Origin: Lepidodermella squamata
Lineage: Eukaryota > Animalia > Gastrotricha
Length of the DNA stretch: 64,000 bases
NCBI GenBank assembly: GCA_047495785.1
Contig: JBLDXI010000011.1
Location: forward strand, 1,116,001-1,180,000
Direction: 5' to 3'
Positions 6,932-49,422 of the stretch are shown here, piece by piece; the stretch's first letter is position 1, and each line of letters opens with the position of its first letter. The notes beneath the pieces were generated by a model. It saw only the letters and a program-made list of their open reading frames with translations. It searched no databases and was not told the DNA's origin. The translations under genes were made by a program, and so were the position numbers.

Positions 6932-7155
6932 GGTCATGAGACGTAGCTAGGACGCCGGAGCTTGAATCCCGCCATACAAACGGACGTGTTGGCGTTATGC
7001 ATGCTTGAATATTCTGAATAATTTCCCTTTTTTTAATTAAATTTTCAGGGTTTAATACAAATAATTATTTTATTAATCCCTGAAATTTAAAAAGTGTTGA
7101 GTTTAAATGTTGAAAGGTTAAAAAAATCGGAGGCGTCGACGCCTACAAAGCTACA
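6932..7155. mobile_element. MITE end (TCATGAGACGTAGCTAGGACGCCG family), inverted relative to the copy at 9484-11295
   Basis: Near reverse-complement match to 11165-11295 plus 10150-10240. Confidence 0.7.
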
Positions 7156-8748: not shown

Positions 8749-11700
8749 ATGCCGTTGAAAACGGCCTTACAAGCTCTGATAGCCCTTATAGGGCTGGCTG
8801 ATTTTGCTGGGGCGCAGCTTAGTTCGACTAATTTGCTAGCGTTATGGCCCATGAACAAACCGTTCGGGCGAAATCCGACTTCTGGAGATACGACAATTGC
8901 TCTGCAGATATCCGGTTCATCATCATCGTCATTGCCGCTTACAACCGGGAACACCGGCGTGTCGAATACTGCGTTGCGAAGCTCGCAATTTTATTCGAGG
9001 CCCATCGCTTTCAAATGGCCACTTGCCACGCGAACGTCACCTGTCACCATTTCATTGTGGGTGAAAATCGGTAATAACGGCGAGCCTTTTTTTGACTGCA
9101 ATTCCGACGGCACTGAACTGATGATGTCGCTGGTAAAAGATCTCACGAACAACAACAAGGTGAATTACAACTTGGGATCATCCGCTAATAAAACGTCCGG
9201 CTCGGCAACTAGCCACACGTTCAACAACAATGCATGCAATGTTGCTGGCAATTGGGCTTTTATGGGCATGTCCTGGGATCCGTCCGGATCGAAATTCAGA
9301 ATAATATGTAATAGCGATACTTATGACGGTCCCAATTGGTATGCAGAATACGCCACCTCAGGAATGTGCTACTTGGGTGTTAACAAGTTAGTTTAGCATG
9401 AAGTATTGATTATTGTTACTTTTCAGTAGTTACTCCTTGGCCTCTGATTACGTTAGCTGTTAGCTAACACGAACTGATCTTCATCACGAGACGTAGCTAG
9501 GACGCCGCAGCTGGGTTGTTAACGAGAAAAATGCTTTGGCAGCGATTATTAGGGTCAAAGGTCACTTTCTGAATGACCTCATTAAATGTTCGCGCTCTCT
9601 TCATCCTTTTTTATGTGAAAAAAAGAACGTGAAAAAGAAAAACAGCTAATTCATGCAACTTGTTTGAGTTGCTTTTTTCTCAAGAAAGTAGTTTGCTAAG
9701 CAAGGTTCCCAAACTTTTTGTCTCGTATGACACCCACAGTATCTTATCAGAATGGCGCGTGAGACTCGTATGACACCCACAGTATCTTATCAGATTGGCG
9801 CGTGAGATTTAGTGCAATTTGTTAAGCTGCAAATTGACTACTTGTTCAAATTGGTTTTTTGATGGCAACCGAGCTCGAAATAATTAATGAAATCCTGGGT
9901 GAAATTTCAACTAAACGTGAGCGAAACTGAAAAACCAGGAAATTTTTAGAATTTCGACACTGAAAAACAACGTATAACAGCATTAGTCATTTTGTCATTT
10001 TTATGCCCTTGGGACACCAGTGTCACAGAACACTTGAAAGTTGGCTTACTACACGAGTGTCCTTACAAGACACGTTTGGGAAACGCTGCTCTACATCTCA
10101 TAGTTCAAGTTCTCTCGATCTGTGTGTTCCGACTTGGAACCTGATTCTAGCTTTGTAACCGTCGACGCCTCCGAGTTTTGTAACCTTTCGGAATTTCAAC
10201 TTAATACTTTTTAAATTTCAGGTATTAATAAAATAATTATTTTGACGCCTAATTGAAACAGGTTGCCCAAATTTTAAATCTGCAGGTGAAAATGACAATG
10301 CCTGCAGCGCATTGTGTGCGCAGCGCATTTTAATGAAACGCAGCGCAAATTACGCAACCTGCAGCTTGATATAAATGAATGCAGCGCGATTTAAGAAGTG
10401 CGCCGCTTTAAGACTTGATACGTAAAGACGTGAAATTATTCCCCGAATTTTTGTAAAATGCATTCGAGAAGTCACTTTTAACTAGTATTTCCGCAATTAC
10501 AAGCGGCTGGGCAGTTTTCGATGAACATGAAGGATGATATGTTTCCATCCTTTTTTCAATTTCACCCGGCGGGGACCGGCTGGTTTCCTATTTCCAGGCC
10601 CCGCCAGTGCAGCTCAGGGCACTGGTTCTAACGGCTGGTTCTAGGTATTGGTTGCACGTGAGCCACGCCACCGATGGCTGCTATAAGGGCAAACTATAAG
10701 GGCAGAAACGGTGTGAGGTATTCGAATGGCGCCGCGTGGCCTCAACTAGTAACCGTGTTATTGACCTCATTTTCAGCGCCCTCGCACTTTGCACGCGGGT
10801 TGTTCTTGTGACTAGTACCGCACAGGTTGTAGCGCCACGGAATGCCGGGTGTGCCACGCGCTCCTACCAGTTTTTCATTCTATCATGGCCCATTGACCCA
10901 CGTGCCAGTCGCAATCGCGTCGAATAACCCAGCACAGATTCAACAAGTGATAATCGGCTATCGGCGCGTGCTTCCGCTTGTTTTCTCCGCACACCTTGCA
11001 CCTCCTTAATCGTACTGGTGACAGCCGGCGCCCCATCGCGCAGAGCCACCGTAAAGACGTCTGGATAAGTGAACATGTGGGCTTCACAATTGGGTGCGGA
11101 ATTAGGAATTGCGCTGCGCGAGTGCGCTGCAGGTTTCGAAATTGGGCGACGGAGCGGTGCGCCTTATTTTTATTAAACCCTGGAAATTTAATTTAAAAAA
11201 AGGGAAATTATTTAGAATATTCAAGCATGCATAACGCCAACAAGTCAGTTTGTATGGCGGGATTCAAGCTCCGGCGTCCTAGCTACCTCTCATGATATTC
11301 ACCTAATACTTGAAAACCTTGGTTAACAAATGCTGTCTTGATATTAAGGGGGACTGTCGATTTGTTCTATGGGAATTCGTACGCTTGTCTCTCCATTTAC
11401 AAGGAGGCAGCTAATGGTCCGGCTGACGTGGCGGCTTTGAAGGCGGCTTGCACAGCTGCCCAAGGTGCGTTGAATGTAATACCATTCCGAAACTTTTCAA
11501 GCATGGTTTTGCCTTTCGATTAGCCGAATGCTCTTTGAACTGCCTGCCGGAGACGTGCGCCTTCAATGGCACAGCCTACAGTTGTACTTGCGACCCTGGA
11601 TGGGCTGGAAATGCAGCATGTACCGTCCGTGAGTTGATATCGAATAATATTGATACCTTCCTCTTCTAATTTAATTCAAGTCCAACTGTCAACTATTTGT

Positions 11701-14700
11701 AAAAGTGTGATAAGTAACAAAAATTATACCACGCCGCTATACGGATTTCCTGCTAAATGGCTTATATCGGACACTAGTGTAACCTCGAGAAATTAAATAC
11801 GACCATTATTTTTTTTATTTGAGATTACGCCATTTCGGGAATTTGAACAAACAAGTGAAATTAGCATGTCATTTCTACGCCTATTAACATCAGGCATACA
11901 TATCGCTAGCGTCGTTGAATAACTCGGATTTAGGCTTGTTTACATCCGTTTCAAGGTCCCGGATGACAAGTAAAAAGCGGATTTTTAAGTATGAATGAAG
12001 AGGCAAAGACAGAACACTTTTCATTTGTCATCTATCTCTGTGAACAAGCCTAAATCCGAGTTATTCAACAACGCTAACGATATCACGGACGTAAACAAGC
12101 TCAAGGCTTAATCAACGACGCGAACTAAAAGATCTGAGCGAAAATTATTTGCACGATTTTCAGCATTTAAATGATGTCAATTAAATGTTGACCAAAGTTG
12201 TTAAGCCACCATTCTGTCAATTCACGAGCCTACATCGCCATCTGAAAGGCTCTTGCCTGTAGTAGATCAGAAAACTCATTTCTTGAGGGAGCGTGAGACA
12301 ACTATTTTCGAGAGTAAATTTGAAGTTTCCAAAACAGCCGTTCCAATTTACCACATTGTTGTCTAAGCAGCAGGGAAAGCTTGGAGAAAGCTTTCTGCCG
12401 GCAACTTCCTCAACCCTCCCCATCTGAATACTCCCATCGCTGGGAAACTCGGTATGTCCCGGATTTATCACCTTCCCTCCGTGATTTTGATCGTGCGATG
12501 CATCGTGTGATCATTTGAGCGTTTCAGAAGAAAAAACTACATGCGTTTTTCATCGGGGAACAAAAATAGAACGCTCAAATGAAAATTGGTTTTCTTTGGC
12601 TGAAAAGCATGAAAGCTGCAGTTTCGCGAATAATCGAGCGATTAGAAAAGTCAGACTTGTCGAAATAGTCGCCAGCGAGATCGCTCCAACTTGCTTAGCG
12701 ATAATCTTTTCAAACGACTATTTGCTATTTGGGAAGACTTTTATTTAGCGTTATAAAATTTTCGAAAAGAGTTGTCTCTCGCTACCTTAAAATATTGAGT
12801 TTTCTGACTTGCGACTTGTCAGCCGTTGATCGCATGTTGATCGCTCATCAGGCTCATTATCAAAAAAACAGGCGATAGTCCTCTTTCAAACGAACCTCGT
12901 GAATACTTAACAAATTCTAAGAAATGAGAGGAACAACTTCGGTCAACATTTACTGGATATACAGTATAATCTCGATATTAAGGCCTTCCCATTCTGTCTG
13001 AATTGCTTCCTTTGCTAATTTGTCGCGGCTAACACTTGTTATCATGTAGCTGTATGTTCGCCAACGTGCGACAACAATGGCAACTGCACAGCTCCAGATA
13101 CTTGCACGTAAGCTACTTCATTAGCGTTAGCTCAACTAACGACAAATCTGCATATCAAGTTGTCCTTCCGGCTGGACGGGTGCCACTTGTTCAACATACA
13201 CATGCACGCCCCTCCTGTGCAAGAACTTCGGTGTTTGCTCGGGCCCGAATCAATGCAACTGTACATCTTCTTGGACCGGGCCGACGTGTCAGATACCGGT
13301 TTGCGCAGCCGGTTGCGATAATGGCGGAACTTGCACTTCACCAGGCATTTGCACGTGCACGTATGCTTGATAAATCTGAGTTTATAAAAGTTGAATTCAA
13401 TCATGTTTGCAGCCCATCATGGATGGGACCTACATGCAGCTCTCGTAAGGCCCGTTTGGGATTTCGTTTAATAATGCTCTAACTTTCACCCTAGCTAATT
13501 GCATTCCTGCGTGCCAAAATAATGCTACCTGCGTGTCTGGAAAATGCATGTAAATGAAAACCTTTTCCCCCCGTTTGGTCATGTTAATATTTGCCAAATT
13601 CATGCAGTTGCCTAGCTGGATATACCGGAGCACAATGTCAAACTCCAATATGCGACAACGCGTGTTTGAATGGCGGCACTTGCTCGGCTCCAAATACCTG
13701 TACATGCACGTAATGATGAAAATTTTCTTAAACTTGAATTGCATAAGTATGATCCATCTTGCTTGAAAATCAGAATTCAACGGACTGGTCCGACTTGTGC
13801 TCAATGTGAGTCCTTCGGGTCTCAAATATTTATTGGAAGTTAATTGATTTATTTTTTCCTTTTCCCCAAAGTCTCTTGCACGCCAACCTGCAAAAATGGC
13901 GGCAGTTGCACTGGTTACAACACTTGCACGTAAGTTTGACATTTGAAAAACACTGCAAACTCAAAATGTGAATTGTGTTGTTTTTTTAGATGTCCTCCTG
14001 GGTATACGGGAGCATCGTGCCAGACGCCGATTTGTACTCCAACGTGCAAAAATGGTGGTAGCTGCATAGCCCCCAATAACTGCTCATGCGTGTACGAAAT
14101 CTCTGAATCATTATTGTTTTAATTAAATTGGTTACAACTCAGAGCTGGCTGGACCAATGCGACTTGCGACGTTGGTATGTTATGAAAACTGATTATCTAT
14201 TGATTCAAGCTTATGCTTTCTTACAGCAATATGCGAACCGGATTGCATGAATGACGGTGTTTGCTATCAACCGAACACGTGCAAGTAATTGAATCTGCTT
14301 TAATGTGAAGCTTGTTTACGAATTGTTCGGAATTGTTTCATATAGCTGCTCGTCAATCTGGTCCGGAAACATCTGTCAATGGCCAGTTTGCAAACCGGCT
14401 TGCGTTCATGGAAACTGCACTTTCAACACTCCTGAAAACACTTGCACCTGCGAGTGAGTCGTATTTGACGGGAAGCTTTCTTCTATATAACAGTATTCTT
14501 TCAACAGACCCGGCTGGGAAGGAGTGGATTGCAACATACGTAAGACTGAGGAGATGCCACCTTAATGGATTTCGAAATGCATTTGAAACAGCAATCTGCA
14601 CTGTACCTTGCCAAAACGGTGGAACATGCATTCTTCCTGATACTTGCGAGTATAATATTTAAAGCCGATTCCTCTGCAATCCGTCTAGCTTTGCATTTTT

Positions 14701-17700
14701 TACAGTTGTACCGCAACCTTTGACGGCGTTGGCTGCAAATTTCGTAAGCTTGAGAAAATGCCTTGTAGACCATCGCAATAATCCTGGTTTCAATCCAGCG
14801 CGTTGCACCCCTCAGTGCAAGAATGGCGGGACTTGTCCAGCTCCAGGCTTTGCCTGTACTTGCCTGTAAGCTTAAATTTTCCTTCGAATGCTTCGCTCTT
14901 AATTCCAACCGATTCAAAGACCTGGCTGGGAGGCTATAGACTGCACTGTGGGTAAGAGATATCAATGTTCCTTTATCGGTAAATAGTAAATTATTTTCGT
15001 TTTTAACAGCGAAATGCAATCAAGTAAGGCGACTTTTGACGGAATGCCTGAATTACTAAGTTTGCGTCGCTTGAATAGGTATGCCTTCATGGAGGAAATT
15101 GTACAGGTAAGAGCCACCACTTTCTTCGCGTTGGCTTTGTTGAAATTGTTTCGGATGTATCCCAATCAAGCTCCTGACGTTTGCACGTGAGTTTGTTCCG
15201 AACTAACAGTCTCACGTAATCTTCGTTTTCTCCTGCGTAGTTGTACGTCTGGTAAATGGAAAGGACCCGACTGTTCAACCCCAATCTGCAGCCCTTCTTG
15301 CAAGAACGGTGGTAGCTGCATTTCGGCAGGAGTCTGCTCCTGCTTGTAAGGACCTGATAAATGCCGAGTACTTGAAAATGATGTTTTGCTCAGACCTGGA
15401 ACCACAGGAACCAGCTGCGAGACTTTTTACTGCACGCCACCTTGTGCCCATGGGACTTGTGGCATCGGCTCGTTTTGCATTTGCGACTTTGGCTACACAG
15501 GGTCAACTTGCAATCAAGGTTCATAGGTTCATTGTCATGTTTCAAACTATCTAACTTGAGTTTCCTTACAGACTATTGCGACCCTTCTTGTCAGAATGGG
15601 GGAACTTGTGTCGCTGGCTACTGCAAATGCCCCGGTTACTGGACAGGATCGGTCTGTACCGATGAAATATGCTCGCCACCTTGTGAAAACGGCGGTACCT
15701 GTCGCGGACAGCAGTGTTATTGTGCTACGGCATTCAATGGGCCCACTTGCAATATTAGTGAGTTATATTTCGGTCGTTGAATGCCTATAAAAATTGAGGT
15801 TCCTAAAAATTTGAAACAACGATTTGCATATGAAATTCTGAGTTCAGATTACTAACTACTATTGCGGCGTTTAAAATTGTGCCTGAATTGGGAAAAAATT
15901 GAAATATTTGCATATGGCATGCATTTGTAGCCAATTTGCAAATTTGATCATCAATTCCGTTTGAATCTTAGCTTGTACCGCGACCTGCCAAAATGGTGGA
16001 ACCTGTGTTGCCGGGGAGTGCAACTGCGCAGCCGGTTGGACAGGAGCCGATTGTTCAACATCACAATGTCCTGCTGGTTTTTGCAAAAATGGCGGAACTT
16101 GCTCAGGTTTGACAAATTTTCGAAAAGATAATATACATCTGAAATAATACTAATTTATTTTATGTGACCAAGGTCCAAATATGTGTGCCTGCCCGTCGCG
16201 TTGGACCGGTGCCAACTGCACGACGCCAAACTGCATCCCAGAATGCGTCTCCGGAAATTGCGTGGACACTGGGTCTGCCAGTGTGTGCACTTGTAAAACA
16301 AATTGGCAGGGAACTTACTGCCAGATTCCTATTTGCAACCCGACTTGTTCGAACGGAGGTGTCTGCCAAATCCCTGGCGGCAGCACTTGTTACTGCGCCG
16401 GCCAATGGACTGGTAAATTGACATTTTTAAAATGCTGCATGATCAAAGTAACGCGAGTATTTTTTAATCCATCGAAGGCCCAAATTGCAACATTCCAGTC
16501 CTTCAAGTTTACGCTGGCAGTTCTGCCTTCACACCTGATGGGTCTTCAGTCTGGACTACGGGTAACATATAAAATTTTCAGGCCAAGAATCGAATACCTT
16601 TTAATAATTATAGACAAACTTCTGGGCAATTTCAACCCCGATACAGTCGATTCAGCTAGTAGGATAGAGTAACATTTTTGAGGCTGCGATGAAACTTTTG
16701 TTAACTCAGGTCTAACTTCCGAAACTTGCTGCCCATGTGACTCTCTTTTAATCGATGGCAACTGTATCTTTCTGAAAGCACTAAATAGCTCGTTGTAAGT
16801 TTTTTTGAAGAGGCAAAGACAAAACGAACTATTTCACTTGAATTCACAAGTTGAATCCTTTTTACAATGTTGATGGATATTGTTTCAGATTCCTCGAAAC
16901 ACCTGTAAATTATGATGCTGCTATTGCGGAATGTGTAAAATATGGTAAGGATTTCAAGCCGAGTAGCATGTCAGGATCATGATCTTATTCTTAGGTGGAA
17001 CCCTTGCTTCGTTCCCCTACGGAAATGCCCAGAAGAATCTCGCTGCATTTTTCTCATGGCTAGCTTCAGATTCGTACATCAACATGCAGAAGTGGCCCGT
17101 AGACTGGTGGAATACGCCAGATGATATCTGCGTATGGATTGGCGTTTATCGCGATAGAGTCGACAAGAAATGGTACTGGGAAAGCTTCCCGCCCGTCGAA
17201 GTGCCAAGTTCGATGTGGGTTCGCTATCAAGACTGGAGCTCGGACCAGTATGCATGCGTGGTTCCCGTAAGTCCTCGCTACTAAAGGATATCCTCTTTTT
17301 GATCAAAATTAAACTCGCAAATCTAGCACAAAGTCTATCCATTGCTGAGAGCTGTTCCCTTGACGAACACCTACCCAGTGGTATGCCAAATGTCCAATCC
17401 ATGTAGCCAGCAATGCAAACAAGGTGACACTCGTATCTTCGATCGTTGCTATTCTCGAGGAGCCGGGACCCCAGTCGATCGGTTGGTTGCTAGCCAGTCT
17501 TGTGAAGCGCGAAATGGAAAGCTATCCGCGGTTCGTCAGCCCTTTGAATTTAACTACTGGGCCTCTGGCTTGTACCCAACAGCGACAGCAATTCAAAACG
17601 GCTGGATTGGCTACAACCATTTGAAATGTAAGCCTTTCTTGATTGGTGATACATGAATAACCGGCTGTTTTAAGCTGACTATATATGGGAGAACGAAAAT

Positions 17701-20700
17701 AAGGCACTGCAACAGCCGTATGATGTAAGATGGGACATTACTACGAACCGGCCGGTTGATCAAACGCAAAACAAATGCACGATGGCTACTTCAAAGGGTT
17801 GGATCGATGTGCCGTGTAGCGGTAATATATTGCCGGCAAACATAGCTTGTCAGAGCCCAGTTATTGACTCGAGACTGCAGGTTGAATTTAGCACTCAGCA
17901 TTCAGTAGCACATTTTCATTCCTCTTTACCAGCCTACAACAACGGCCGCCCCCGCTCCAGCCGTTGTAGTGACGACGACACCAGCCACCACGACGACAAC
18001 TTTGCCGAGTTATTGCGATAGTCCCTGCTCGGCAACACGTAAGTTTAAAATTTAAAGTAAACATGCGTAACAAAAAAGGTAGCGACGAGACCCGAGTTTT
18101 TTGACAAGAAACGAATTATTCTGCTTCGGGCTTCCGCGAGCTGACTTTTTGCTCCATTTCGCATCCTTACCGGAATTCTTAATCTACTTGATAGGTTGAT
18201 ATTTCCAGTTGTAGTGGTTGCACCACAAAAACTGTACTCTACAACACCCATATGTGCAAATATCGGCAAGCGGTCTATAATGGAATGATTGAAACAGTTT
18301 TAGCGTTCACTCCACTACATCAGAAGATACGGGGACATTATGCTTCCATGCAGGATGAAAGTCCGCGTGGTCACGTGGCATGAATAATTAGTTCCGAGGC
18401 GTTGTTTTTCCGTGCTTCGTCGTTTCGTCGTTCTGTCACTTCGTCATTTCATATTTCATACAACAAACTTACGAAAGAAAAAAATGGGTTAAAAGGAGGA
18501 TTCGAACCCGGGACCACTGGGTATGGACCCACAAGGCGAGACCACTGTGCAATAGTGCTGGTTGTCATCCTCTTCCGTCAATTTTATATGCTAAGCAAAC
18601 GCTACAGCTACACATAAGCGTTTTCAGTCAGTCTCAAATAGGAAGGCTCCTATTGTATAGCGGATCCTTCGAATCCTGAAGGTCCCGGGTTCGAATCCTC
18701 CTTTCATCCCATTTTTTTCTTTCGTAAGTTTGTATGAAATGACGAAGTGACAAAACGACGAAACGATGAAGCACGGAAAACACAACGCCTTAAACTATTC
18801 ATGCCACGTGACCACGCGGACTTAGATTCTGCAACATGGGAGCATAATGGCATCGATCCAATGTGGGCAATGGTGATAATTTTATCTCACGAAATCTACT
18901 TATTTGATAACCGACCTATCGTCGAGAGTATTCTGGATCTCTAATTCTAACGATATTTTAGCGCCTTGCCCCCCTGGCTACGTATACAACGCCTGCTGGG
19001 ACAGGTGAGAACATACAGCAAACTTTATATTTGTCATTATGCTGTTAAATTTGTATCTACAGCTGCTACAAAGCTTAGTAAGTTTTTCTATTCATCTCTC
19101 GCTGTCAAGATGAGTCCGTTGCGATTCCGATAGCACCTCGACGGAAAAATACATGACAGCAAATAATAAGTGCTTGGATGATGGGGCTCATCTGTTTGTT
19201 CCCAATACGCAAGAGGAACTGAACGACGTTGTGAAAATGCCTGGTGTAAATCTCAATGACGCACGAGGTTATTGGATCGGTTTGCAGGTTAGATAGAATT
19301 TTTAGTTAGGTGGCAAGATACAAAAATATATTGTTCACAGGACTACATAAAGTAAGGAAATCAATCAGGGGTCAAATTAATTGTACGCGACTACGTTTGT
19401 AGAAAAGTCAATTCAGACTACCGCGCGATGTTGGGTGGTTCAGATCCAGGTAAATATGAAATATGTGACAACACTGATCGGCAGAATAAGTTAACTTTTT
19501 TTCTAATCAGATAACGTTTGGATGTCACTTGATGACCGCATGACTATTCGCCCGCCTTACACTACTGTTACAAGAGGTTCCGATTCCTATTACACAAGCG
19601 CTAGCGCCAGTTGGTTACTTTGGACCGATAATCCCGGCGCGTCTAATGAGGTCACATTCATACGAGGTGATACTGGCAGATGGGCAGTAGAAGTCAATCG
19701 CATTTCTGAGGATAAAGACCGGAGTTACATTTGCGAGGTAGGTTACCTACCCACTTTGGGTGAGGTGCATGAGCGTGTCATTTGTAGTTTGCTATCATTG
19801 CTATCATCCAATTAACTCGGAGGTAGCGTTTCGGGGTTTATAAGTTCAAGTCTCTTTTGTCAGTTTGCGTCCAAGTGCTATTTTAGGGAATCTGGTTGAA
19901 CACAATGAAGCACTGTTAATATGCTGATGATATGATTTATGTCCTTTCAGTACTCCTATGCCTGCAAGCAGTGCGGTGGTACGGTCTATTCAAAATTGCT
20001 AGATTGAATATAATTTTCTTTCAACTTGCCTCAGGATATTTCAAATTTCTCGACAAGTGTTTCCAAAATTGGGGTGTAACTGGATCCAATAATGCTAGAA
20101 ACTGGTGCACCGGTTGGGATCGCGAGAGCAATTTGATCAGTCCGAAAACAGTTGGAATAGCTGCACTGACTCGCTATTATTCGGAAAAATTATCGGGTCC
20201 AGAGAAGGTATGGATCGGAGTCAGGTATATCTCCGGCTCGTGGACTTGGGAGGTGAAGACATAATGTTCCCAACCGATTGTCTGCTCTATTACATTGTTT
20301 CAGGACACTAATCTACCTGTCGATTTCAACACACAAGCTTTTGTGCCGGATAATAGAATAGTTGGATACAATGACTTGGCTTGGGAACGAGGGGATACAG
20401 GAAAGGACGCCCCTGGCGTGCGCGGTGGCTGGGTTAACAACATCCCAGACTCCGGGTATTGCATATGTCAAATAAACTACAAGTTTCTGTACACACCAAC
20501 AACAACAACAACGACAACTTCTACAACGACTACTTCATGCAAGGCAAGTATCAAATCAATTAATTCAAACGCTTGTTACCTCTCTGCATTTTCTAGGATA
20601 AATGCTGCCCTTGTGGTTTCAAGTTTAATCAAAACAACAATAAATGTTACATGTTCTCCACAACTCAGTAAGGGGGATGGTGACTTTTTAGAAGTTATCA

Positions 20701-23700
20701 TGTAAATATCTACTTCAGGAACACTCGGTTACTAGCGATGCAGGATTGCATCAACCGTGGCGCCACATTGGTTTCCTTTGCCAATTCTAACGAAATGCAG
20801 TTTCTCAGTACCGACTCGCAATTCACGCAAGGTCAATACTGGACGGCATTGAGTAAAAGTAAGTATAAATTATACGTTCAATTTCAAGAAGTGAAAACCA
20901 TGATGATTAGATATGTATGGCGTTTGGGCCTGGCCTGATGGCACTGTTCCAGTGAGTTCCATCATTGCAGCCGGCCAATTAAGCTCCAATAGTGACTGCT
21001 ACGGAGCCCTCGTAAAAAAAAGTCCACCAGGTTTGGTTGAGGTTTGCGGGTTCAGTTATTCCAACCAGCCCAACAGTCCTACCCTGAACATGACGGTCGT
21101 ATCACCTAGTTCTAGCCACTGGTACAACTACATCTGCGAAATCGCTAGTCCGTGTCAAAGTAACTTTAACAGCTTTTTTGAAGCTATTACTAAATCTTAT
21201 TGATTGCTATAAGGCTGCCAAAATCCGATTCCAACTTCCGGGCTAAAGCCTTTTTATTCGAACTCTGGTTTTTCGTTGCCGCTGAGAGTTGCTGCGAATA
21301 AATGCATTTGGATTTTCAATGATACTAACGGCAATCGTGCCTACAACGTGAGAGCTTGCAAAGCGGCTGGCTTGGAACCTGTAGCTCTGCTTAATCGTTA
21401 TGAAAACGAAGTGCTCGAACAGTACCTTACTGCTTCAACACAACGTGTTTGGACGGACTTGATTCTGTCCTCGAAAACTAGTATGCTTCACGTTTTGATG
21501 CTTAATCCTAATTTTCACTACCTCTCATTGAAGCACTCTATACCTGGGACGGAGAGTCCAGTTCATACAGCAGATTAGCGGCAGCTCCTACAAACACCTG
21601 GCAACAACCGTGCGCTTTTATTGACAGAACAAATATGAAAATCAATGTCGATGCTTGTGTCAATCCACGATACCCTATTTGCACTGTTCCCTCAGCAACT
21701 TCATGCTCAGGTATACGGTGTTACTTCTCCAAAATTGGGTTACCTCCCATATTTCATTAGATATGTGCCCTGCTGGCTTCAAATGGATATCTAGCAGTAA
21801 AGCAGGCGGTTCCTGCATAAAAGTAGTGCTAAAGTGGGTTGTTCAAACTTTTAAATCTCGAGTTCTCCCATTTCGCCAAATATTCTAGCGAAACTGCAAC
21901 CGATCCGTTGCTTGCACGTCAGCGTTGTTGGGCAATGTTTGCGACCTATGGCTTAGTTTCGATCAACAGTGACGCAGCTCAGGATGAGCTTGCTAGCTAT
22001 CTTAAAAGCTTGTCTGTCCCTGCATCTACTACATTCTGGATTGGGCTCGACAATAGCATGACCAAACAGGGTACAGTTGGTTATGTATCTTACCAGACAG
22101 ACCCCGATAACAGTAAGATATTCTAGAGATATACACTAGCACTTCTGATCGTAATCACTAACAGAGTGGATATGGGACAACAACGATCCCAATTTTCCGA
22201 CTCCCAGCCGATTTTGGAAAACAGGCCACCCTATTAATACGAACGGTTACGCCTATGCTGAATTCAACCCAACTACCCCGACGCTCGTAGCTGTAACTAA
22301 TCCGGCAAGCGGTGGTGCAGGCAGATATTTCATATGCGAACGAACACAGCCGTGTTTAACGTGCGAACCCGGTTGGACGTATTTCAACGGCCAGTGTTAC
22401 AAATATTTGAAATACAACGATGACTACTATTACAATCGACACCGCGGGCTATGCGATTTCTTCGGCGCCTATATGATTACACCGAATACAGGCATCGAAG
22501 ACAGCTTCTATCGGACGGTCATCTCCAGGACCAATCAACCCTACCTGTTCTACTTTGGACTTTATCGAACGCGTTTTCCGCTACTAGCTGTTACGCCTCT
22601 CTGTAAGCATATTAAAACGCTCTTCAACTTACGATGAAGAAAAATGTGCCCCGCAGATAGGGCAGATAGATAAGTAATTATCGTGTTCGATAAGTACTTG
22701 TTCACAATTGAAATATCAACTAAGCTTGTTGGTAATTTGAAGTGCTTTTATTATTTTGTCAGACATTTTGACTGTTATCTTCAATCGGCATTAGCAAGGA
22801 TTATTCGCATTTGGAGTAAACAACGCTGCCGTTCAATTGCTTTCATGCATCTCGGTTCTTGACGCACTTTCTCAAAAGACCTTTTTTATTATTTGCAAAC
22901 TTCTATTCAGAAATACAGATCTAAAATTTTGTAGAGTTTAAAATCGATCGAAGCTCACTGAAATCGAAAAGGGTATTTTTCTAACCATGAAAACTTTCTA
23001 AATATCTTTAAAATCAGTTGCTAACCTGTTACTGTGAATTCGTTGAGGATCTAGGCGTTACATTAAATTGATCAAAATACTTTGGTCTTGCGAATTTCAT
23101 TTTAGCTTTGAAGTAAATAAGTGAATATTTTATGAAATGTAATGCCGCGGAAATTTATTTAAACCTAGTTATTGACTCGTTGCTATGAAAAATGATGAAC
23201 ACCGAATATACGAGTTAAAACCGGTATGTTTAAAACTGAAAATAGATACTAGTGAACCCTGCTTTTCAGTTTTCAATCTTGACCAATCCAACTTTAAATG
23301 CGAATAATCCTTGCTAATGACTACGTAGATAAGTTGAAAAAACAGTAGCGTCAGACAGAACAATAGAAGCGCGAGAAATTACAAACAACCTTATTTCAAA
23401 ACATCTTCTCATCCTAAATATCGACTATATGTCACTATTTTCCTAGCATGGTTTGACTACGATGATGGTACTACTCTGGCCGATTGGCAGTTCGCGAACC
23501 TAGGTTATAGGGAGCCCAACATGGCGTGGACTAATGATAATGTGGAACCAGTATTCGGTCTGTATTACGGAGATGCGTCAGTATGGTCCGACATACAATA
23601 CTACTTCACGGCGAGGGATGCTGTTTGTGAGAAAAGCGCTAAGCCTTTTTCAAACTCATGCCCAAGAGGTTAGTTTTTTAATAGGATTTTCTCTTTGAAA

Positions 23701-26700
23701 CAAAGACAAAATTTCTACGCTGCAGTTGGCTCTGGGCCCTCAACTTGCGCTGAAAACATAATGGCAGGTCTTTATCTGAATGCCTCTGTTGGGTTCACTG
23801 TCAGCTCGTCCGTCCAAAATTCACCACCCCAAGTCATGGTAACCAATGGTATGCCATGGGTACCAGCTCCCACCGATACAGCCCCATGGATCAGAGTAAG
23901 CATTGATCTATGAAATGTTTGCATTCATCTTTTTATATTGACGATGTTAAGATTCGTTTCTCCCAAACCGTTTACATGCGAGCGATTAGCGTTATCGGTA
24001 GCTCTCTAGGGCTTGTAAGCACCTACCGTCTCCAATTTAAAGCGAATAGTGGAGCAACAAATTGGGACGACTTTTATGTAAAACGTGCTGCAGCCATGTT
24101 TGTGAAGGAAAGTTACATAATGTTCGCGGGCAGTGCGAACAGTAACATCAAAAACAATCAAGAAATATGCCCGCGTGCTCTTGTTGCCGAAATTCAACTG
24201 ACGCCACTTTCATGGGTGAACAAAGCGGCGGTTCGAATCGATCTCAAAGGCTGCGACACGTCCATCTCAGGTTTGGAACATTTCACAAACCGGGAATGGT
24301 TACTGTGAATCTGATTTATCCTTCTACTAGTGAGCTCATTTTGCGAATGTTGGAATGAGCTGCTGCTTCACACCAATACAACCTTCTGGTCAGCAACAGA
24401 GCAAAGCACGTTTCCGTTTTTACCTGAGTCGGAGGGCGCTGACTCTGTGTTAGACGCGAACGCTAAAGCGGCACCGCTGAAGAGGGAACAGTTATCAGAT
24501 AGCTCATACCCGAACGGCTGGTTGCCTGTCACTGTGGATAACGCGAACTACTGGCAGGTTTCCTTTTCCGTGGTCAAGGTTATTGCTGGGCTCGTGATGA
24601 CTGGTAGAAGGGTGGCTGGCGAGAACAACTACATAACATCCTACTATATCCAATGGTCACCAAATGGCTACAGCTACACATACAACTATTACTTGAATTC
24701 TGAAGGATCCCCTAAAGTTAGTCTGTTGCAATCTGAACTTTCAAACAACTTTCATTAAATTATTTCAGCTTTTCCCTGGACCTAGCACATCGAACGGGAT
24801 CTTACAACAAACCTTCTGCCCACCGATCAAAGCGATATCGTTCAGAATTTTACCCGATAGTTATAAAAATCAACCTGGTCTATTGTTAGACCTGTTTGGC
24901 TGCAACGGACGTGGCAAGAGATGTAATATTTTACGTGTTGATATAGCGTTAGAAATGTAAAGTTCGTCATAAAACAGGCTTTGATTGTTGTAATGAGGTT
25001 GGAACTTGCCAGTGCTTCTGTCCGGCTGGTTACACCGGTTCAACTTGCAGCACGCCGATGACTGATCCAATCAATTATTACATAGACGCTCCTCCGCCTG
25101 TTTGTGAATCGACTGATCTACTCCCTATAGCCTTCGCGAAACAATGGGGTGGTAACGGTGTTACTGCATCAAGCGCACAAGAAGACCCGAAATATGCTGT
25201 GTTCGGGCAAGATCCGGAAAAGGGTTGGATTCCATTGACCACAGACGTTAGGCCATACATCGAAATCGATATCGGAAAGGTCATGTCAGTCAGCATGATT
25301 CAGCTGTCTGGGAATAGCAATGCGCGAGTAACCTCGTACGGAGTTTGGTTCAAAGTTCCAAACAAGGGTGATAATATGTTTTACCCGGTTCTCACTACTC
25401 AGACGGACCCAACCTCGCCAGTCAAAGTGAGCTTAGTTTCCATTTTTTCATTGATAGATAATTGAATTCATTCAGCCAATACCTGGGGCTCGTGGGATTT
25501 CGTCTACCAGATACATTCCGTTCAGATTCTGCCCTACTCTGCGCACTGATGTTTTGCGCATTCAGCCGTTTCAGTATTTGAACCAGCGAGTTATGAGATT
25601 GAAAGTTTTTGGCTGCCCGCCCCATGCTTCATGTTCTACCTGCTGTACTAACTCTGCCGGTTGTACCTGTTCTTGCCCGGTTGGGTATCAAACTAATTAC
25701 CAGAGCTCAAGCGTTGCCAACCCCTGGGAACATTGCGGTAGGACTCGAAAATTAGAGCGTCCAATTTTGATATAATATATGTCTATCATAGAGCAATGGT
25801 CCTTCCAGCCCATCGATTGCGAAGATCTGGCTTTTCACCAGCCGACTTTACCTAGTGGCGAATATACGATTTACCCACCAGGAATGCCGGCAATGAAAGT
25901 GTATTGCGAAATGGCGGCTTTTGGCGGAGGCTGGACTGTTATCCAACGGCGTATTGATAAAACGCAAGATTTCTATCAAACGTGGGCAACATACAAGGCA
26001 GGGTTCGGAACTCTCTCCACCAACTTCTGGTTTGGCAATGACAAAATCCACAATCTAACAGCTGGGATAAATAAATACACGCTGCTTGTCGTGCTAACTG
26101 CTGCTGATGACACTGTAGCAATAGCTCATTACGATCAATTCTTGATTGAAAGCGAAAGTGATAAGTATCGACTGAGATTGGGGAATTTTGTCTGCGGGAA
26201 TGCGCAAGATTCGCTCAGCTATCATAAGAATTATGAGTTTGCCACAAAGGATAAAGATGCGCCTTTTCGATGTGCTCAAGCTTACTACGGCGCCTGGTGG
26301 TACGGGGAATGTCATCAAAGGTTTGCTGGCCATTCAAAATTATTAAAGAATGTTTCACATTATTCCTATGAAGCAATCTCAATGGGATATATGGGTCGAG
26401 GGACTTCGGCCAAGGTATCAATTGGCTGACATTCCGAGGTTATTACGAGTCAGTCAAAACTGCCCGAATGATGATTCGTAGATCCCCGATGCCTTACTCA
26501 CTGCCAAGTTAATAAGCAATTTTTTATTTTTCCATATTAAGCTATTTTTGCAAACAGATTTCTCGCCTACATATCCTTACCCCGTCGATTGTCAAGACAT
26601 TTTGTTCAATAACCCAAATGCTGGTTCGGGGATTTATCGAATCTACCCCACAGACGTCTCTCTTTCCACTGTTGTAAATGTCTATTGTGATATGGCAGCT

Positions 26701-29700
26701 TTAGGAGGAGGATGGACTTCCATAGCTCGTCATTACGATGCGACAGTGAATTTCACACAAAATTGGGACACATATTCGAAGGGGTTTGGCAGCCCGAGTG
26801 GAAATTTCTATCTCGGCAATGATAACATTAGAACGCTCACGGATTTCAAAAAGACTAACCTGCCATACACATTGGCTATAGTTATGGAGGATTCGACGGG
26901 CGAAAAGCGGACTGCCTATTACACAAATTTCTACATTGGAGACTCAACAGCTTTTTATGATCTGAACTTTGGAAGTTACGTATCGAATGAAATTGAACTG
27001 CCCGGTAATTTCACAAAATTGCTCAGTTAGCTGTAAAATGTTTGTAATCAAGGTGATGCCCTGTCGGTCCACAAAGGGAATGTTTTCAAAACCTATGATA
27101 AGTCGAGCAGTGACTATTGCCCGAAAGCTCGCAGTGGTGGCTGGTGGTTCGATCAAGATATGTATGCGACAAACAGCGGTTACTGCTTGGAATCAAATGC
27201 GAATGGAGCATACGGAAATACAGACTTCGAAATGGGCATGAATTGGGTGACGTGGAAAGGCCGTTATGAATCACTGAAAAGCATTGTTATGCTGATGAAA
27301 CGACCAAGTAGATTTTCGCTCGTAACTGTGGATTTTTAGTTGACAATTTTTTTGAAGATGAGAAACCGGTTGACTGTCAACATATTCTGGCCCAGTATGG
27401 CGGCACTGCAACGGATCAGCGGTATTGGATGTACCCGTTAGGTCTAAGGTCCACTCGATTGCCGTGTCAAATGTCGGCTGATGCCACCAACTCGAAAGGA
27501 TGGACTGTATGACTGCTTCGTCTCTCTAATATAACCTTCATCTTTTTTCTTTAAGCTTGTTGCTCGACGAACAGCATACGCTATTGATTTCGAAAGAAAT
27601 TGGCAGGATTACAAGGATGGTTTTGGAGACAACGGTCTCGGTGGATCAGATTTCTACTTCGGTTTGTCCTAATATATTGTCAAGCTAATCCCGCCATTTT
27701 TTGAATCGGGATAGGTAACGAAAATCTGTACAAGCTCACAAATTCTGCCTCTTACTCACTACGAATAATTATGAAATCTCAATCTGGATCATCTGCGACT
27801 GTTTACTATGACAATTTCCGGCTCTCGAGTGAGGCCGATTTCTACCGACTCTTTGTATCGGGGTTCACTCTGGGTGGCGGAACTGCAGGTAGGGAGAATG
27901 AGATTATACGAACTCTTTGTATTTGATAATGTTGAGCAGGAGACTCTCTTTCCGTTCACAATGGGTTGCAATTCTCAACTGCTGACAAGGGACCCTCTCA
28001 GGACTGTGCAAAGGCCTCGTTAGGGGGATGGTGGTTCCAAACTGGTTTTACCTGCTTCGATTCATTTTTATTTGGCAAACTTAATTCGAGTGCTGATTTC
28101 CCTTCGAAATGGTCATCATTTGCTAGCGGATTGACTCTGAAAGAAGTATCAATGGCAGTGAAACGCCGCATCGTTATCGATGCCTACAGTGCTAAATCAA
28201 CAGCCCTGTGCGGGGCGATGCAAGTGACGCAGCACACCTGCGATCATCCATTCAAATACGACGGAGGGGATACCATTCGAATGCCTCTGCCCAATATAGG
28301 GAACGGATTTTTTACTGGAACGGACATCATTTGCACGCGTAAGAATAAAATTCGACGTTTTTGAACTGATGTCGCTGATTTTTCTCGGTAGCTTATCCTC
28401 AGCCACAAGACTGCGCTTATCTGCAATCGACGCTAACAGGGACCACGAAATACTTTTCCAATACCCAAACTAACCTGTACAGCTCAGTAAGTGGAGCCTT
28501 CACAGCTTACTGTGACATGGAAATGATGGGAGGTGGATGGACTGTTATTCAACGCCGAGTTAATAACAAGCAAACCTTCTTGCAAGACTTTACCGGCTAT
28601 GAATTATCTTTTGGGAGCTACAAGAATAACTTCTGGCTGGGCAATAGCGTTATTCGAGCTTTAACTCAAGCGGATAAGTATCAGCTGCTTGTTGAACTTC
28701 AAGATGCTAGCAACAACTACGCATTCGCTTTGTACGACTTATTCTACACAACTTCGAGCGTCAGTGTACTTAAGCTAAGGTGAGTTCAGCAAGACTAATC
28801 AATGTAAATTGTGAATTTTGCTTTTCAGTGGCTATCAGGTTTGTTCAACAGCCGGTGACTCTCTAACAACTTTAACTGACAAGGCTTTTATCGTAAGTTT
28901 AGACGCTTCATATCCAATGGCCAAGGTCTCTTTTGTTGATAGGTTGATGACTGTGGAACGGGCGGTTGGTGGAGATCCGCTCCTTGCCAATGGCCGTCTC
29001 TAACTTCGAACTTGAACGCCCCTTACGTGTCGACATCTTCGTGTGATCGGGGTATCTACTGGTGGACCTACGGCGGGGCTTACTGCCCTAACCTGGCTTA
29101 CACTTCCATGAAGATTCGTCCGAAATCCGCTGCTAGTGTGCGCTTCGTGGCAGCTAGCAATTTCTCATGCGCGACAACATCTTTCCAATCTCTGGGTGTT
29201 GGGTCGGGAGACGCTTGCCAGAAACTATGTGCTGACGAACCTAATTGCAAATTGGCGGTTTACGACAAGAGCAATAACAATTGCTCCCTCCAGTCATCAA
29301 TTTGCGTGCCTGGGGATGGCAAAGGCAGCATAAATGGCAACAGAGATACGTTCTTCAGGATGGACAGCTGCACTAGCATTTCACCAACTTGCGGACCTAA
29401 TCCGTCTATGGTAAGTGTATATCAACTATTTTAGGGCTAAGTAAATCAGGTGGAATTTCCAAGGATGGCACAACTCAAGAAATCATCAATATGCCAACGA
29501 ATCTCACCGTTCGGTACACATGCATGCCTGGCTATACTAATGCAGCCTGGAATGGGGATAATACTACCCTTTACTGTATGGAGAAGAAAATTGCATACGT
29601 TGTAGTATTTTAATGTCTGCCCTTTCCAGGTGACCAATCAAAAAAGCGCTGGGTGGGAAGGTTCCTGGATTGTCAAACCCTATGCGGACCATATCCAGTA

Positions 29701-30503
29701 ATTGCTAATGCCCAGTTATCGCCAGATATTACCGTCAGCGGGGGTACGATGACCCTTTATTACACCTGCAATGTAGACTATGAATGGGTTGCTGGCGATC
29801 TTACACGAATTTGCGGTTTGTCTGCTACCTCATTCCTTTCTGTTTTGAAGTTCTGTGTCTGCAGAGCCTCCTTATAACGGATTCAAAGGAGATACTCTGA
29901 ACTGCTCCTCAACATTGTGCCCGACACTGCCTTTCGTCGACTTCAGCACTTACAACGTCAGTGCTACTGGAGCTCCGATTAATAGACGATTCACCATCGT
30001 TAACTTCACATGCGATAAGGGATATCTCTTTGAACAAACGCTGTTGAAATCATCCCTCATTCAGTGCGATGAGAAGAGTACCTGGTCGCCGTCAGATCCT
30101 GGAGCTTGCATCCGTTAGCGGATATTTATTTTTTTATTGTTTGAAAAAGTATCGATTTAATTTGCAAATACAGCTTTCCACTGCGGACTGTCGCCCTATG
30201 TTGACAATTGCGTCATTTCACCAGATGCCGCATCCACGCCGAAAATATGGGAATATATGACAACTATATTTTACATGTGCAAGAATGAACAGGTTCTTGA
30301 TCCACTTCTCTGGGACAACAACGTCACGATCGCGTGTGTTGGCAACGAAACTTGGGGCGTTGTCGACTATGTCGGGCCTAATGGACCGAGACCGAAAGAT
30401 TGGCTGCCATCTAAATGCAAAGGTTAAATGGGTTAAAGTTAAATCAGGCTCAGCTCACAACTGAGGCTTGAAAACATTTCGTTGCTCAGAGCTTGGGCAA
30501 TGA
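8749..30503 (+). CDS. Giant multi-exon secreted mosaic protein: SP-LamG-EGFx~21-CTLDx8-FA58Cx3-FReDx4-PAN-CCPx4 (gene span, roughly 75-80 exons)
   Basis: Signal peptide MPLKTALQALIALIGLADFAGA. Frame stays continuous across the splice junctions checked by hand. The last CCP exon (..WLPSKCK) splices to E-L-G-Q-TGA at 30490-30503. No transmembrane segment seen. Not every junction was verified. Confidence 0.8.
9701..10087. mobile_element. hAT(Charlie)-like MITE containing a 43-bp tandem duplication (9722-9807)
   Basis: Ends CAAGGTTCCCAAAC / GTTTGGGAAACGCTG resemble hAT-Charlie termini; TSD not clear. Confidence 0.5.
10261..11151. mobile_element. Nested TIR element with GCAGCGC subterminal repeats
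   Basis: GTTGCCCAAATTTTAAATCTGCAG vs CTGCAGGTTTCGAAATTGGGCGAC; absent from the homologous arm at ~7050-7080. Confidence 0.55.
11904..12079. mobile_element. MITE, CGTTAGCGTCGTTGAA family
   Basis: ~37-bp TIR (CGCTAGCGTCGTTGAATAACTCGGATTTAGGCTTGTT), ATAT on both flanks; second member at 38568-38703. Confidence 0.75.
12182..12952. mobile_element. Possible TIR element in intron 3
   Basis: TAAATGTTGACCAAAGTTGTT ... AACAACTTCGGTCAACATTTA. Confidence 0.45.
18359..18823. mobile_element. Fold-back/MITE with ~150-bp TIRs whose inner ends are tRNA-derived
   Basis: AAGTCCGCGTGGTCACGTGGCATGAATA ... TATTCATGCCACGTGACCACGCGGACTT; both arms end in GGTCCCGGGTTCGAATCCTCC. Confidence 0.8.
18495..18559 (-). 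pseudogene. Degenerate tRNA-Met(CAT)-like sequence
   Basis: AGCACTATTGCACAGTGG (A box) ... TGGGTCCATACCCAGTGGTC ... GGTTCGAATCC (B box). The acceptor stem cannot pair. Confidence 0.55.
23727..25735 (+). other. Three F5/8 type C (discoidin) domains with interspersed EGF-like modules
   Basis: PWIRIRF...LTPLSWVNKAAVRIDLKGC; GWLP...YWQVSF...ITSYYIQWSPNG; GWIP...PYIEIDIG...VTSY...RLKVFGC. Confidence 0.85.
25810..29125 (+). other. Four fibrinogen C-terminal (FReD) domains
   Basis: DC...SG.Y.I...VYCEM..GGGWTVIQRR...F...W..YK.GFG...NFWFGN and GAWWY/GGWWF motifs, four times. Confidence 0.9.
29140..30422 (+). other. PAN/apple-like domain followed by four Sushi/CCP domains
   Basis: ACQKLCADEPNCKLAVYDKSNNNCSL; CGP.P...Y.C..GY...C...W...C, e.g. 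CPTLPFV...FTCDKGY...IQCDEKSTWSPSDPGAC. Confidence 0.75.
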
Positions 30504-30826
30504 AGATGAACGTCATTGATAAAATTGCACCTTGGGCTAATTTTCTGTTGCTTCTTTTCGTTTATCCCCTCCGCTGATGGGAAGCGATGATGATTGACCT
30601 CCACGTGGTGCTTCCTGGATCCGCTGTAGCGGAACTGACAAATCATCAGCCATTAATGATGGAAACTGTTTACTATTTAATTAATTTGTTCATTTTTTTA
30701 AAGCTGTTACGCCCAAGAGAGGGCAGCTCGACATCGTTGGGCAAAACAACATCTAATTGCGAGATAGTTAGGACAAGAAAGCTGTGGTAGGAGAAGACAA
30801 GAAAGTTATATGCGGATTCATTTGTG

Positions 30827-31942: not shown

Positions 31943-32791
31943 TACATGACAACCGCAAAATTGAATTCAACAAGCTGTTCCACGGTAAAAATGGAAGTGG
32001 CATCATACAATGGAAGGGAAGGAGCCTTAGCGATAATACCTGTTGCCGCCTTTCTATCGATGTGAGGATCGCTGATGGCTAATGGTTTCGCTGATCGCAG
32101 CTTGCCCGTGAAGATGAACAATTATTTGATTGATGTAAACTTGAAAACTCTATGAATCACAATATGACAACGTGTCTCGTCTGCTGACTTTCCTGATGAA
32201 ACAGGGGGATGAGTACCTATAGCAAAAGCAAACGATTTCAAACCTAGCCTTAGCATTAAGCATTAATGTGCCCGCTGAAAACGTTTAACCCCGACCTCTG
32301 AAACGGCTCCAAATGACTCTGGCTCTTGGCACGAAAACTAGTGGCTGCACTTTTTTTCTCTTGTAGAGCTTCCAAACCTGGATATCACGCTCTTTAAATA
32401 AATAAATAAATAAAGAACTTTCACGCATTTCGGTTTTTCTTTAGCTATTTTTAGCTCGCCCAGAGTATTATTCCGCGAACGCCCTGTATTATCACACGAT
32501 CATGTACTGACCAAATCGCATCCCTTGGCAAAATTCCAAATTCGCACATTGTCAAAATTCGTTTTATTAGCTTCGCAGGTATGCATTTTTGTAAGGAGGA
32601 GAATGCCGAAACATAATTCTCGTCCATTTTAGCTACATACAGGCTAAGCCGCGATGTATAATTTCATCAGCTTCAAATTATTACATTAACAGACATAATA
32701 GGCATCCTTTAGATATTTCTCGTTCTACATGCTGATTATAATTATTTGGAAGCTGAAGAAATTAACAGTTGAGTTACAAATTGTAGCGGAA

Positions 32792-38452: not shown

Positions 38453-38567
38453 TAGATATTCAAATTTAACACTTAATTAGTGTCCAATACATATTGACAT
38501 TCTTTGTTTTGAAATGGAAGAAACAGCTAAACCAAAGCAGGATGAATCGCCATCACTGCTCCGTAGT

Positions 38568-38703
38568 CGTTAGCGTCGTTGAATAACTCGGATTCGGGCT
38601 TGTTCGCGTCAGTTACTGACAGTTGACGGGCGATAACAAGTTTGCTTCCCCTCTTCACTCACATAAAAACTCCCCTTTTGCCTTCTTTTCAACGACGCTA
38701 ACG
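38568..38703. mobile_element. Nested MITE, CGTTAGCGTCGTTGAA family
   Basis: 16-bp perfect TIR; left arm homologous to 11904-11940. Confidence 0.7.
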
Positions 38704-49367: not shown

Positions 49368-49422
49368 TTGCGTTTCGAAAAGAAACAATGATATCAGGCA
49401 GATTTTTTTCTTTCAATAAGTC

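Follow-up and report, generated by a model that had tools for sequence, protein, structure and literature searches.

The forward strand of a 64,000-nucleotide (nt) stretch of Lepidodermella squamata DNA (GenBank assembly GCA_047495785.1, contig JBLDXI010000011.1, positions 1,116,001 to 1,180,000; hereafter the window, with positions counted from its first letter) carries at 8749-30427 what appears to be one intact spliced gene for a giant mosaic protein. The modules, among them six types of extracellular binding module besides the EGF rod, are arranged in the order signal peptide, LamG-like domain, 21 EGFs, eight C-type lectin-like domains (CTLDs), three discoidins with two EGF-like modules, four fibrinogen-related domains (FReDs), a PAN domain, four complement control protein (CCP) modules and stop. 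The product is predicted to be secreted and to have no membrane anchor. It may act outside the cell as a multivalent cross-linker or coat protein, forming a scaffold for matrix, mucus or a surface coat, and we assign this reading a probability of roughly 0.55. The gene is probably a lineage-restricted product of domain shuffling.

Dense coding sequence in short pieces was found on the forward strand between 8.7 and 30.5 kb of the window. The splice model was obtained by dynamic programming with a codon table trained on obvious coding pieces, an intron-length prior and GT or GC donors, and two places, in CTLD5 and CTLD7, were set by hand from the sequence. In the resulting model, the ATG lies at 8749 and the TAA at 30425-30427, and 74 exons provide 12,426 nt of coding sequence, which encode 4,141 amino acids (aa) without an in-frame stop. 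The predicted protein, a putative glycoprotein, has a mass of about 450 kDa, a pI of 5.4 and 258 cysteines (6.2%). The median length of the 73 introns is 54 nt, and 66 of them are 45-70 nt long; GT-AG ends are present in 72 introns and GC-AG ends in one. The GC content of the short introns is 33.8% versus 48.3% in the exons, and no introner-like similarity was found among the short introns of the gene. Six introns exceed 200 nt, and four of these form a long class of 844-1,962 nt.

The evidence for the gene is genomic DNA sequence, and the case for a single gene is structural. Four exons carry parts of different modules, namely EGF and discoidin (24978-25426), discoidin and EGF (25476-25737), the end of FReD3 and an insert of about 55 aa (27940-28338), and the end of FReD4, PAN and the start of CCP1 (28943-29410). 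Exons 17327-17627 and 22165-22602 join halves of neighboring CTLDs, the latter containing the end of CTLD7 and the start of CTLD8. The remaining junctions between domain classes are introns of about 50 nt and therefore leave no space for a gene boundary. Two of the four long introns interrupt a single domain, the LamG-like domain (9387-11348) and CTLD8 (22603-23446), and the other two (11629-13049 and 18039-18961) lie between modules. A scan of the 4,141 aa in windows of 19 residues, using Kyte-Doolittle (KD) hydropathy, revealed no second hydrophobic segment able to start another secreted product. The mixed-class exons, the short junction introns, inverted repeats in the long introns, the single signal peptide and the presence of six cysteines in all 21 EGFs thus argue for one gene. 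On this point the preliminary description of the window, which had proposed one continuous spliced gene, was borne out by the 74-exon model without in-frame stop, the mixed-class exons and the one signal peptide.

A model in which at least two genes were merged, or in which the gene is decaying or truncated, could invoke the lack of RNA support and the position of the introns 11629-13049 and 18039-18961 between modules. However, 12.4 kb are read without an in-frame stop, the reading phases agree across the long introns, which contain inverted-repeat insertions, and no internal signal peptide occurs although all modules are of disulfide-rich extracellular types. Taken with the other class junctions, which are found within exons or at introns about 50 nt long, this makes a merged or broken model very improbable.

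The preliminary description had also placed the end of the gene at 30503. This end is reached when an optional 67-nt last intron (30423-30489) is spliced out, which gives a stop at 30501-30503, but without this intron the stop lies at 30425-30427. The donor at 30423 ranks 14th among the 72 true donors. In both versions the chain ends three to six residues past the last CCP cysteine. No transmembrane helix, as stated before by the first reading of the sequence, and no glycosylphosphatidylinositol tail was found in the 4,141-aa product; there is no hydrophobic window (KD above 1.5) beyond the signal peptide, and the chain stops after CCP4. Transmembrane-coding exons farther downstream, which had been considered as a possible continuation, are not present in the window either, where the sequence passes at about 31.5-31.9 kb into an unrelated array of repeats. 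Between the stop and this array no coding potential was found on the forward strand; therefore exons for REJ, GAIN, PLAT or transmembrane segments do not follow within the window.

The domain list and counts of the earlier reading (21 EGFs, eight CTLDs, three discoidins, four FReDs, PAN and four CCPs) were reproduced by Pfam, profiles and cysteine counts, with a weak LamG-like part. Positions of all modules are given in Table 1. For the N-terminal domain, the Pfam match stays below the cut-off, and protein-language-model features of exons 1-2 pointed with 0.97 to LamG_3/ConA-like clusters (26 of 40 matches). An AlphaFold2 single-sequence model of this domain had a pLDDT of 42 and was unusable. 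These signals are weak but consistent, and a ConA/LamG_3-like fold is probable.

The EGF rod that follows is encoded in part by exons with a repeated pattern of 58, 102 and 32 nt. Its Pfam matches were EGF_2, above the cut-off, EGF_TEN with 6.7e-9 and 1.1e-9, both below the whole-family cut-off, and EGF_Teneurin. The first half of EGF13 is split in the splice model into three micro-exons. When rebuilt from these, EGF13 is a regular six-cysteine EGF, and the introns flanking the micro-exons are 54-64 nt long and have GT-AG ends. The split looks like an intron gain within one repeat of the tandem array. The two extra introns of EGF13 (55 and 64 nt) resemble no other intron of the gene.

The eight CTLDs are divergent. 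Single CTLD exons mostly gave no match in Pfam, and Lectin_C was matched at 2e-4 by exon 38. A profile of the eight N-terminal halves, compared with the PDB, found PLA2R (6e-28), DEC-205 (1.6e-26), MRC1, and also CD23 (2e-8). The motifs WND and QPD occur in none of the eight domains in the alignment. EPN was found only in CTLD8 (aa 2206), at the expected place and followed by WSD, and in this domain the inner disulfide cysteine pair is missing. The eight domains are thus probably CTLDs by fold only, as none of them shows EPN or QPD together with WND and the conserved disulfides of a true Ca-dependent carbohydrate-recognition domain. Two micro-exons are predicted in CTLD3. One of them (19063-19077, 15 nt) encodes the Cys-Tyr that is conserved where a CTLD starts, and the other (19341-19351, 11 nt) is model-dependent.

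The C-terminal head begins with the discoidins. The first of them matched factor V/VIII C domains at 1e-5 and scored 0.90 in a protein-feature comparison, and self-BLAST detected no similarity linking the three discoidins to one another. The EGF-like module among them matches Notch EGF. All four FReDs are complete and cover about positions 16-230 of the 232 positions of a hidden Markov model (HMM). They were aligned with ficolin-like and tachylectin-like proteins for a survey of motifs. FReD1 is the most canonical; it has kept the Cys-His pair and NLNGxY (here NLNGIY), and its Ca loop is three residues short. We take the Cys-His pair and the Tyr of NLNGxY to line an acetyl-group pocket, as in the structures of TL5A, ficolin and FIBCD1. 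In FReD2, the position of the pocket His is occupied by Leu, and an insertion precedes the Cys; FReD3 shows Phe at this position, and its P-domain motifs are degenerate; in FReD4, Gln is found there and the Ca loop is deleted. Pairwise identity among the four FReDs is 25-42%, and the four-FReD block is therefore old and not the result of a recent local duplication. The insert that separates FReD3 from FReD4 (about 55 aa) matched no Pfam family at E<=1. The protein-feature comparison also points the PAN region to PAN clusters, and the CCP profile, compared with the PDB, found CR2 (3e-17) and CD46 (6e-11) and also C4BP, DAF and factor H.

With WND or QPD in none of the eight CTLDs, EPN in CTLD8 only and the pocket motif in FReD1 only, the term multi-lectin used in the preliminary description was too strong. 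Most of these modules seem to be lectin folds and not demonstrable lectins, and one domain or at most a few look like competent binders of sugar or acetyl groups.

Table 1. Coordinates of the features of the gene and of one repeat within it (positions in the window).
Feature	Positions	Strand	Remarks
Start codon and signal peptide	8749..8817	+	aa 1-23; first ATG after an in-frame stop; sole 19-aa window with KD>1.5
ConA-like/LamG_3-like domain	8818..11464	+	exons 1-2, split by the 1,962-nt intron 9387-11348; Pfam Laminin_G_3 E=0.003, below cut-off
EGF rod	11524..16492	+	aa 252-929, exons 3-28; 21 contiguous six-Cys EGFs of 30-34 aa each, 126 Cys
Micro-exons of 14, 28 and 16 nt	15010..15186	+	first half of EGF13, in place of the usual 58-nt exon; splice model
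Eight divergent CTLDs	16727..23640	+	aa 974-2247; coordinates approximate
Hinge 1, Thr/Pro/Ala-rich, mucin-like	17933..18007	+	aa 1275-1299, after CTLD2; model translation
Inverted repeat, MITE/foldback-like	18336..18849	.	arms of ~180 nt, 84% identity; self-BLAST; intron 35
Hinge 2, poly-Thr, mucin-like	20493..20537	+	aa 1621-1635, after CTLD4; model translation
GC-AG intron	20544-20596	+	donor AAG/GCAAGT; next exon opens CTLD5; read from the sequence, recovered with GC donors allowed
Three discoidins (F5/8 type C) and two EGF-like modules between/after them	23726..25737	+	aa 2259-2837; Pfam F5_F8_type_C 3.1e-7 and 2.5e-6
FReD1	25792..26487	+	aa 2840-3051; Pfam 8.5e-47; local HMM 2.4e-80; ficolin-2 5.5e-44
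FReD2	26579..27301	+	aa 3066-3291; Pfam 6e-31 and 1.5e-10; local HMM 2.8e-55
FReD3	27358..28170	+	aa 3294-3512; Pfam 3.4e-5 on C-terminal part; local HMM 1.4e-47
Insert of ~55 aa, Cys-containing	28174..28338	+	between FReD3 and FReD4; shares exon with FReD3 end
FReD4	28392..29126	+	aa 3571-3781; Pfam 1e-25; local HMM 3.5e-43
PAN/apple domain	29138..29371	+	aa 3785-3862; Pfam PAN_1 5.4e-7, 29.8 bits versus cut-off of 21.4
Four CCP/Sushi modules	29390..30421	+	aa 3869-4139; Pfam Sushi 6.9e-5
Stop codon TAA	30425..30427	+	three residues past last CCP cysteine

Relatives were searched for with contiguous exon pieces and not with the whole spliced protein, so that a giant relative with a different N-terminus could escape these searches. 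An exhaustive phmmer search of 1.84 billion representatives with the N-terminal exon gave no match at all. As the query itself was not matched either, the library does not contain the proteins of this genome. A word search with the FReD4-PAN exon, which sees only proteins of 86-273 aa, had no match, and a metagenome scan with FReD1 also had none. FReD1 gave 212 matches in a further search, none of them above 50% identity, in molluscs, spiders, echinoderms, cnidarians, rotifers and vertebrates. Since these are scattered over phyla at 50% identity or less, they indicate neither an orthologue nor a taxon. The exact gene product is not on record, and full-text literature searches retrieved no paper describing this domain order. 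The architecture, which had not been recognized at first sight, thus remained without an orthologue in the exon-level searches.

Relatives within the species are indicated by the sequencing run of the source DNA (X1). It yielded extra contigs that are about 85-92% identical over the last CCP exon (30266-30384), with extra depth, and paralogues therefore exist. A second run (X3, from 2015), which carries another organism label, contains tiny contigs with at least 99% identity to the gene across 26400-30100; the same species, or its DNA, was therefore present in that sample. Joints to the opposite strand in the contigs of this run are artefacts of the assembly and carry no information on splicing.

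Known proteins share parts of this architecture. Tenascins (C, R, X and W) are likewise secreted matrix proteins in which successive compact EGFs, each about 31 aa long, occur together with a FReD; the EGFs of the gene match EGF_TEN and EGF_2, and FReD1 matches the FReDs of tenascin-R and tenascin-C at 1e-38 to 1e-32. However, a tenascin starts with an assembly domain, includes FN3 repeats and ends in its one FReD. In the gene product, PAN and CCPs come after four internal FReDs, and eight CTLDs and three discoidins are added; no FN3 was found in it, all 4,141 aa being assigned to other modules or short linkers. The mannose receptor family (MRC1, PLA2R, DEC-205 and Endo180) also has eight tandem CTLDs, most of them without sugar-binding motifs, but its ricin-type and FNII domains, transmembrane helix and endocytic tail are all absent here. 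In CASPR/neurexin IV, an internal FReD is likewise found together with discoidin, LamG and EGF. The order in this protein is F5/8C-LamG-LamG-EGF-FReD-LamG-EGF-LamG-transmembrane helix; only one FReD is included, a cytoplasmic tail is present, and CTLD, PAN and CCP are missing. The earlier statement that CASPR and the mannose receptor share only subsets of the domains therefore holds, as neither the order nor the transmembrane helix of these two was found in the gene product.

Selectins and lecticans combine CTLD, EGF and CCP in one extracellular chain, and SVEP1/polydom, likewise a giant mosaic, unites EGFs and CCPs with a pentraxin/LamG-like module. All of them differ in order and numbers and are without FReD or discoidin blocks, and the selectins are bound to the membrane. 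FReD1 resembles the ficolins, TL5A and FIBCD1 in keeping the Cys-His pair and NLNGxY, with about 45-50% identity to the FReD of ficolin-2. These proteins are small, however, and have one C-terminal FReD and collagen or coiled-coil oligomers, whereas four FReDs, three with degenerate pockets, are present in cis in the gene product.

In the reading favored here, the single N-terminal signal peptide would send the chain into the secretory pathway. The LamG-like cap would be followed by a stiff rod of 21 EGFs of the tenascin/teneurin type, then by the CTLD segment with two Thr-rich hinges that could be O-glycosylated, and finally by a binding head of three discoidins, four FReDs, PAN and four CCPs. 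From these modules we infer ligand binding and cross-linking. The action of the protein would depend on avidity, with a small number of modules competent for glycan or acetyl binding and many that interact with proteins. FReD1, with a putative ficolin-type acetyl-group pocket, is the candidate for glycan binding, possibly together with CTLD8, through its EPN, and the discoidins. The other lectin-fold modules, which have lost their canonical sites, would more likely be protein-binding or spacer modules. In favor of this reading, cohesive or adhesive matrix proteins have been documented that are large, secreted and rich in cysteine and pair EGF arrays with lectin or discoidin modules (PMC6410801, PMC10057474).

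Several points weigh against this reading. No relative from another species was found in which conservation or splice sites could be checked. Transcript, protein or expression support was not found among the available sequencing runs, which are the source DNA run and the second run with its contigs of 53-153 nt. Four of the micro-exons (11-16 nt) depend on the splice model, as do the exons around 19288-19510, and the assignment of pocket residues in the FReDs follows motifs known from the ficolin, TL5A and FIBCD1 structures and not a structural model. No oligomerization domain was found in the gene product, so that its valency is that of a single chain. Finally, roles in matrix, immunity, glue or a gamete coat would all fit the sequence.

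A rather unlikely alternative, though the strongest of those considered, is a humoral pattern-recognition protein or opsonin, in which microbial glycans would be the ligands of the FReD, CTLD and discoidin modules and the CCP tail would connect to complement-like factors. The identity of 45-50% between FReD1 and ficolin FReDs, with the pocket motif kept, would fit such a role. Combinations of CTLD, EGF and CCP are common in invertebrate repertoires, and combinations of CTLD, FReD and CCP are common among invertebrate immune candidates (PMC11797021). However, the canonical binding motifs are absent from seven of the eight CTLDs and from three of the four FReDs, and 4,141 aa with a rod of 21 EGFs resemble matrix proteins more than known soluble pattern-recognition receptors. 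The latter are small and oligomerize through collagen or coiled coils, neither of which is present in the gene product.

Less likely still is a protein that gives cohesion to an adhesive or mucous secretion, such as glue, tube, house or footprint material. Temporary adhesives repeatedly contain cohesive proteins that are giant, secreted and cysteine-rich and combine EGF arrays with CTLDs, discoidins or further lectin modules, for example sea-star Sfp1, flatworm Mlig-ap1 and sea-urchin Nectin (PMC6410801, PMC10057474). The gene product is similar to these in its very large size, its secretion signal, its cysteine content and its combination of an EGF array with CTLDs and discoidins, and, like it, these proteins have no detectable orthologues outside their lineage. 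The Thr-rich mucin-like hinges and the highly amplified array of small secreted cysteine-rich genes next to the gene would also suit this role. However, the temporary-adhesion proteins are a functional class and not a homologous family. They have no FReD, PAN or CCP and carry vWD/C8/TIL, SUEL-lectin or basic repeats, whereas the gene product is without vWD/C8/TIL, SUEL-lectin and the Lys/Arg-rich regions typical of this class and is acidic.

Somewhat less likely again is the idea that the protein is a soluble partner, decoy or bridging ligand of polycystin-1-like receptors, with gamete or self/non-self recognition as a possible setting. The age of the four-FReD block and the existence of the paralogous contigs would agree with it, but no receptor gene is present in the window. 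Polycystin-1/REJ receptors such as suREJ and PKD1 have REJ/GAIN-GPS, PLAT and 11 transmembrane segments, none of which occurs in the gene product or downstream of it in the window; in turn, the gene product has eight CTLDs and the LamG-like cap. In the more explicit form of this idea, recognition would work through a pair of components, the protein being the soluble one, and its head, from the discoidins through the four FReDs and PAN to the CCPs, would be an ancient block common with polycystin-1-like receptor channels; we consider this doubtful. It is likewise a long shot that the secreted form, as a competitor, bridge or ligand presenter, tunes channel activation. If true, such a system would amount to ion-channel-coupled glycan or pattern sensing with secreted modulators, of which we have met no description. 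The least probable alternative of all is the merged, decaying or truncated gene discussed above with the splice model.

The component domains of the scaffold or coat protein proposed here are all already known. What appears to be new is their order; unusual features are the tandem of four FReDs inside the chain and the great number of modules with a lectin fold. To our knowledge, a FReD is in nearly all cases C-terminal and the only one of its chain. If the model is right, the eight CTLDs, three discoidins, four FReDs and the LamG-like domain make the protein one of the largest single-chain collections of lectin folds. The gene also shows the extent of domain shuffling in a compact genome with short introns. 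Taken alone, it opens no long-standing question, and its function is a guess.

Inverted-repeat elements resembling foldbacks or miniature inverted-repeat transposable elements (MITEs) were found by self-BLAST in three of the four long introns. The insertion listed in Table 1 accounts for the length of intron 35 (923 nt), and the others lie at 11900-12083 in intron 3 and at 22718-23396 in intron 52. A further copy of the 45-nt arms of the element at 11900-12083 was found at 38567-38605, within the downstream array. Fragments of another repeat, 88-95% identical and inverted, are present upstream of the gene (6934-7153) and in its first intron (10148-11295).

The downstream array starts about 1.1-1.5 kb past the stop and runs to the end of the window, with its units in 31943-64000. 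It consists of tandem and inverted units of 2.46 kb with at least 99.6% identity and contains about seven gene copies, some of them without the first exon. Examples are the equivalent segments 32068-32790, 34531-35253 and 42997-43719 and the inverted copy 49420-50368. The gene in each unit has three exons and encodes a small secreted cysteine-rich protein, with a signal peptide, a Thr/Ser/Cys-rich region and two cysteine-containing exons, which matched no Pfam family. The stretch just past the stop of the large gene (30578-30777) had about ten-fold depth in the source run, which points to a high-copy repeat.

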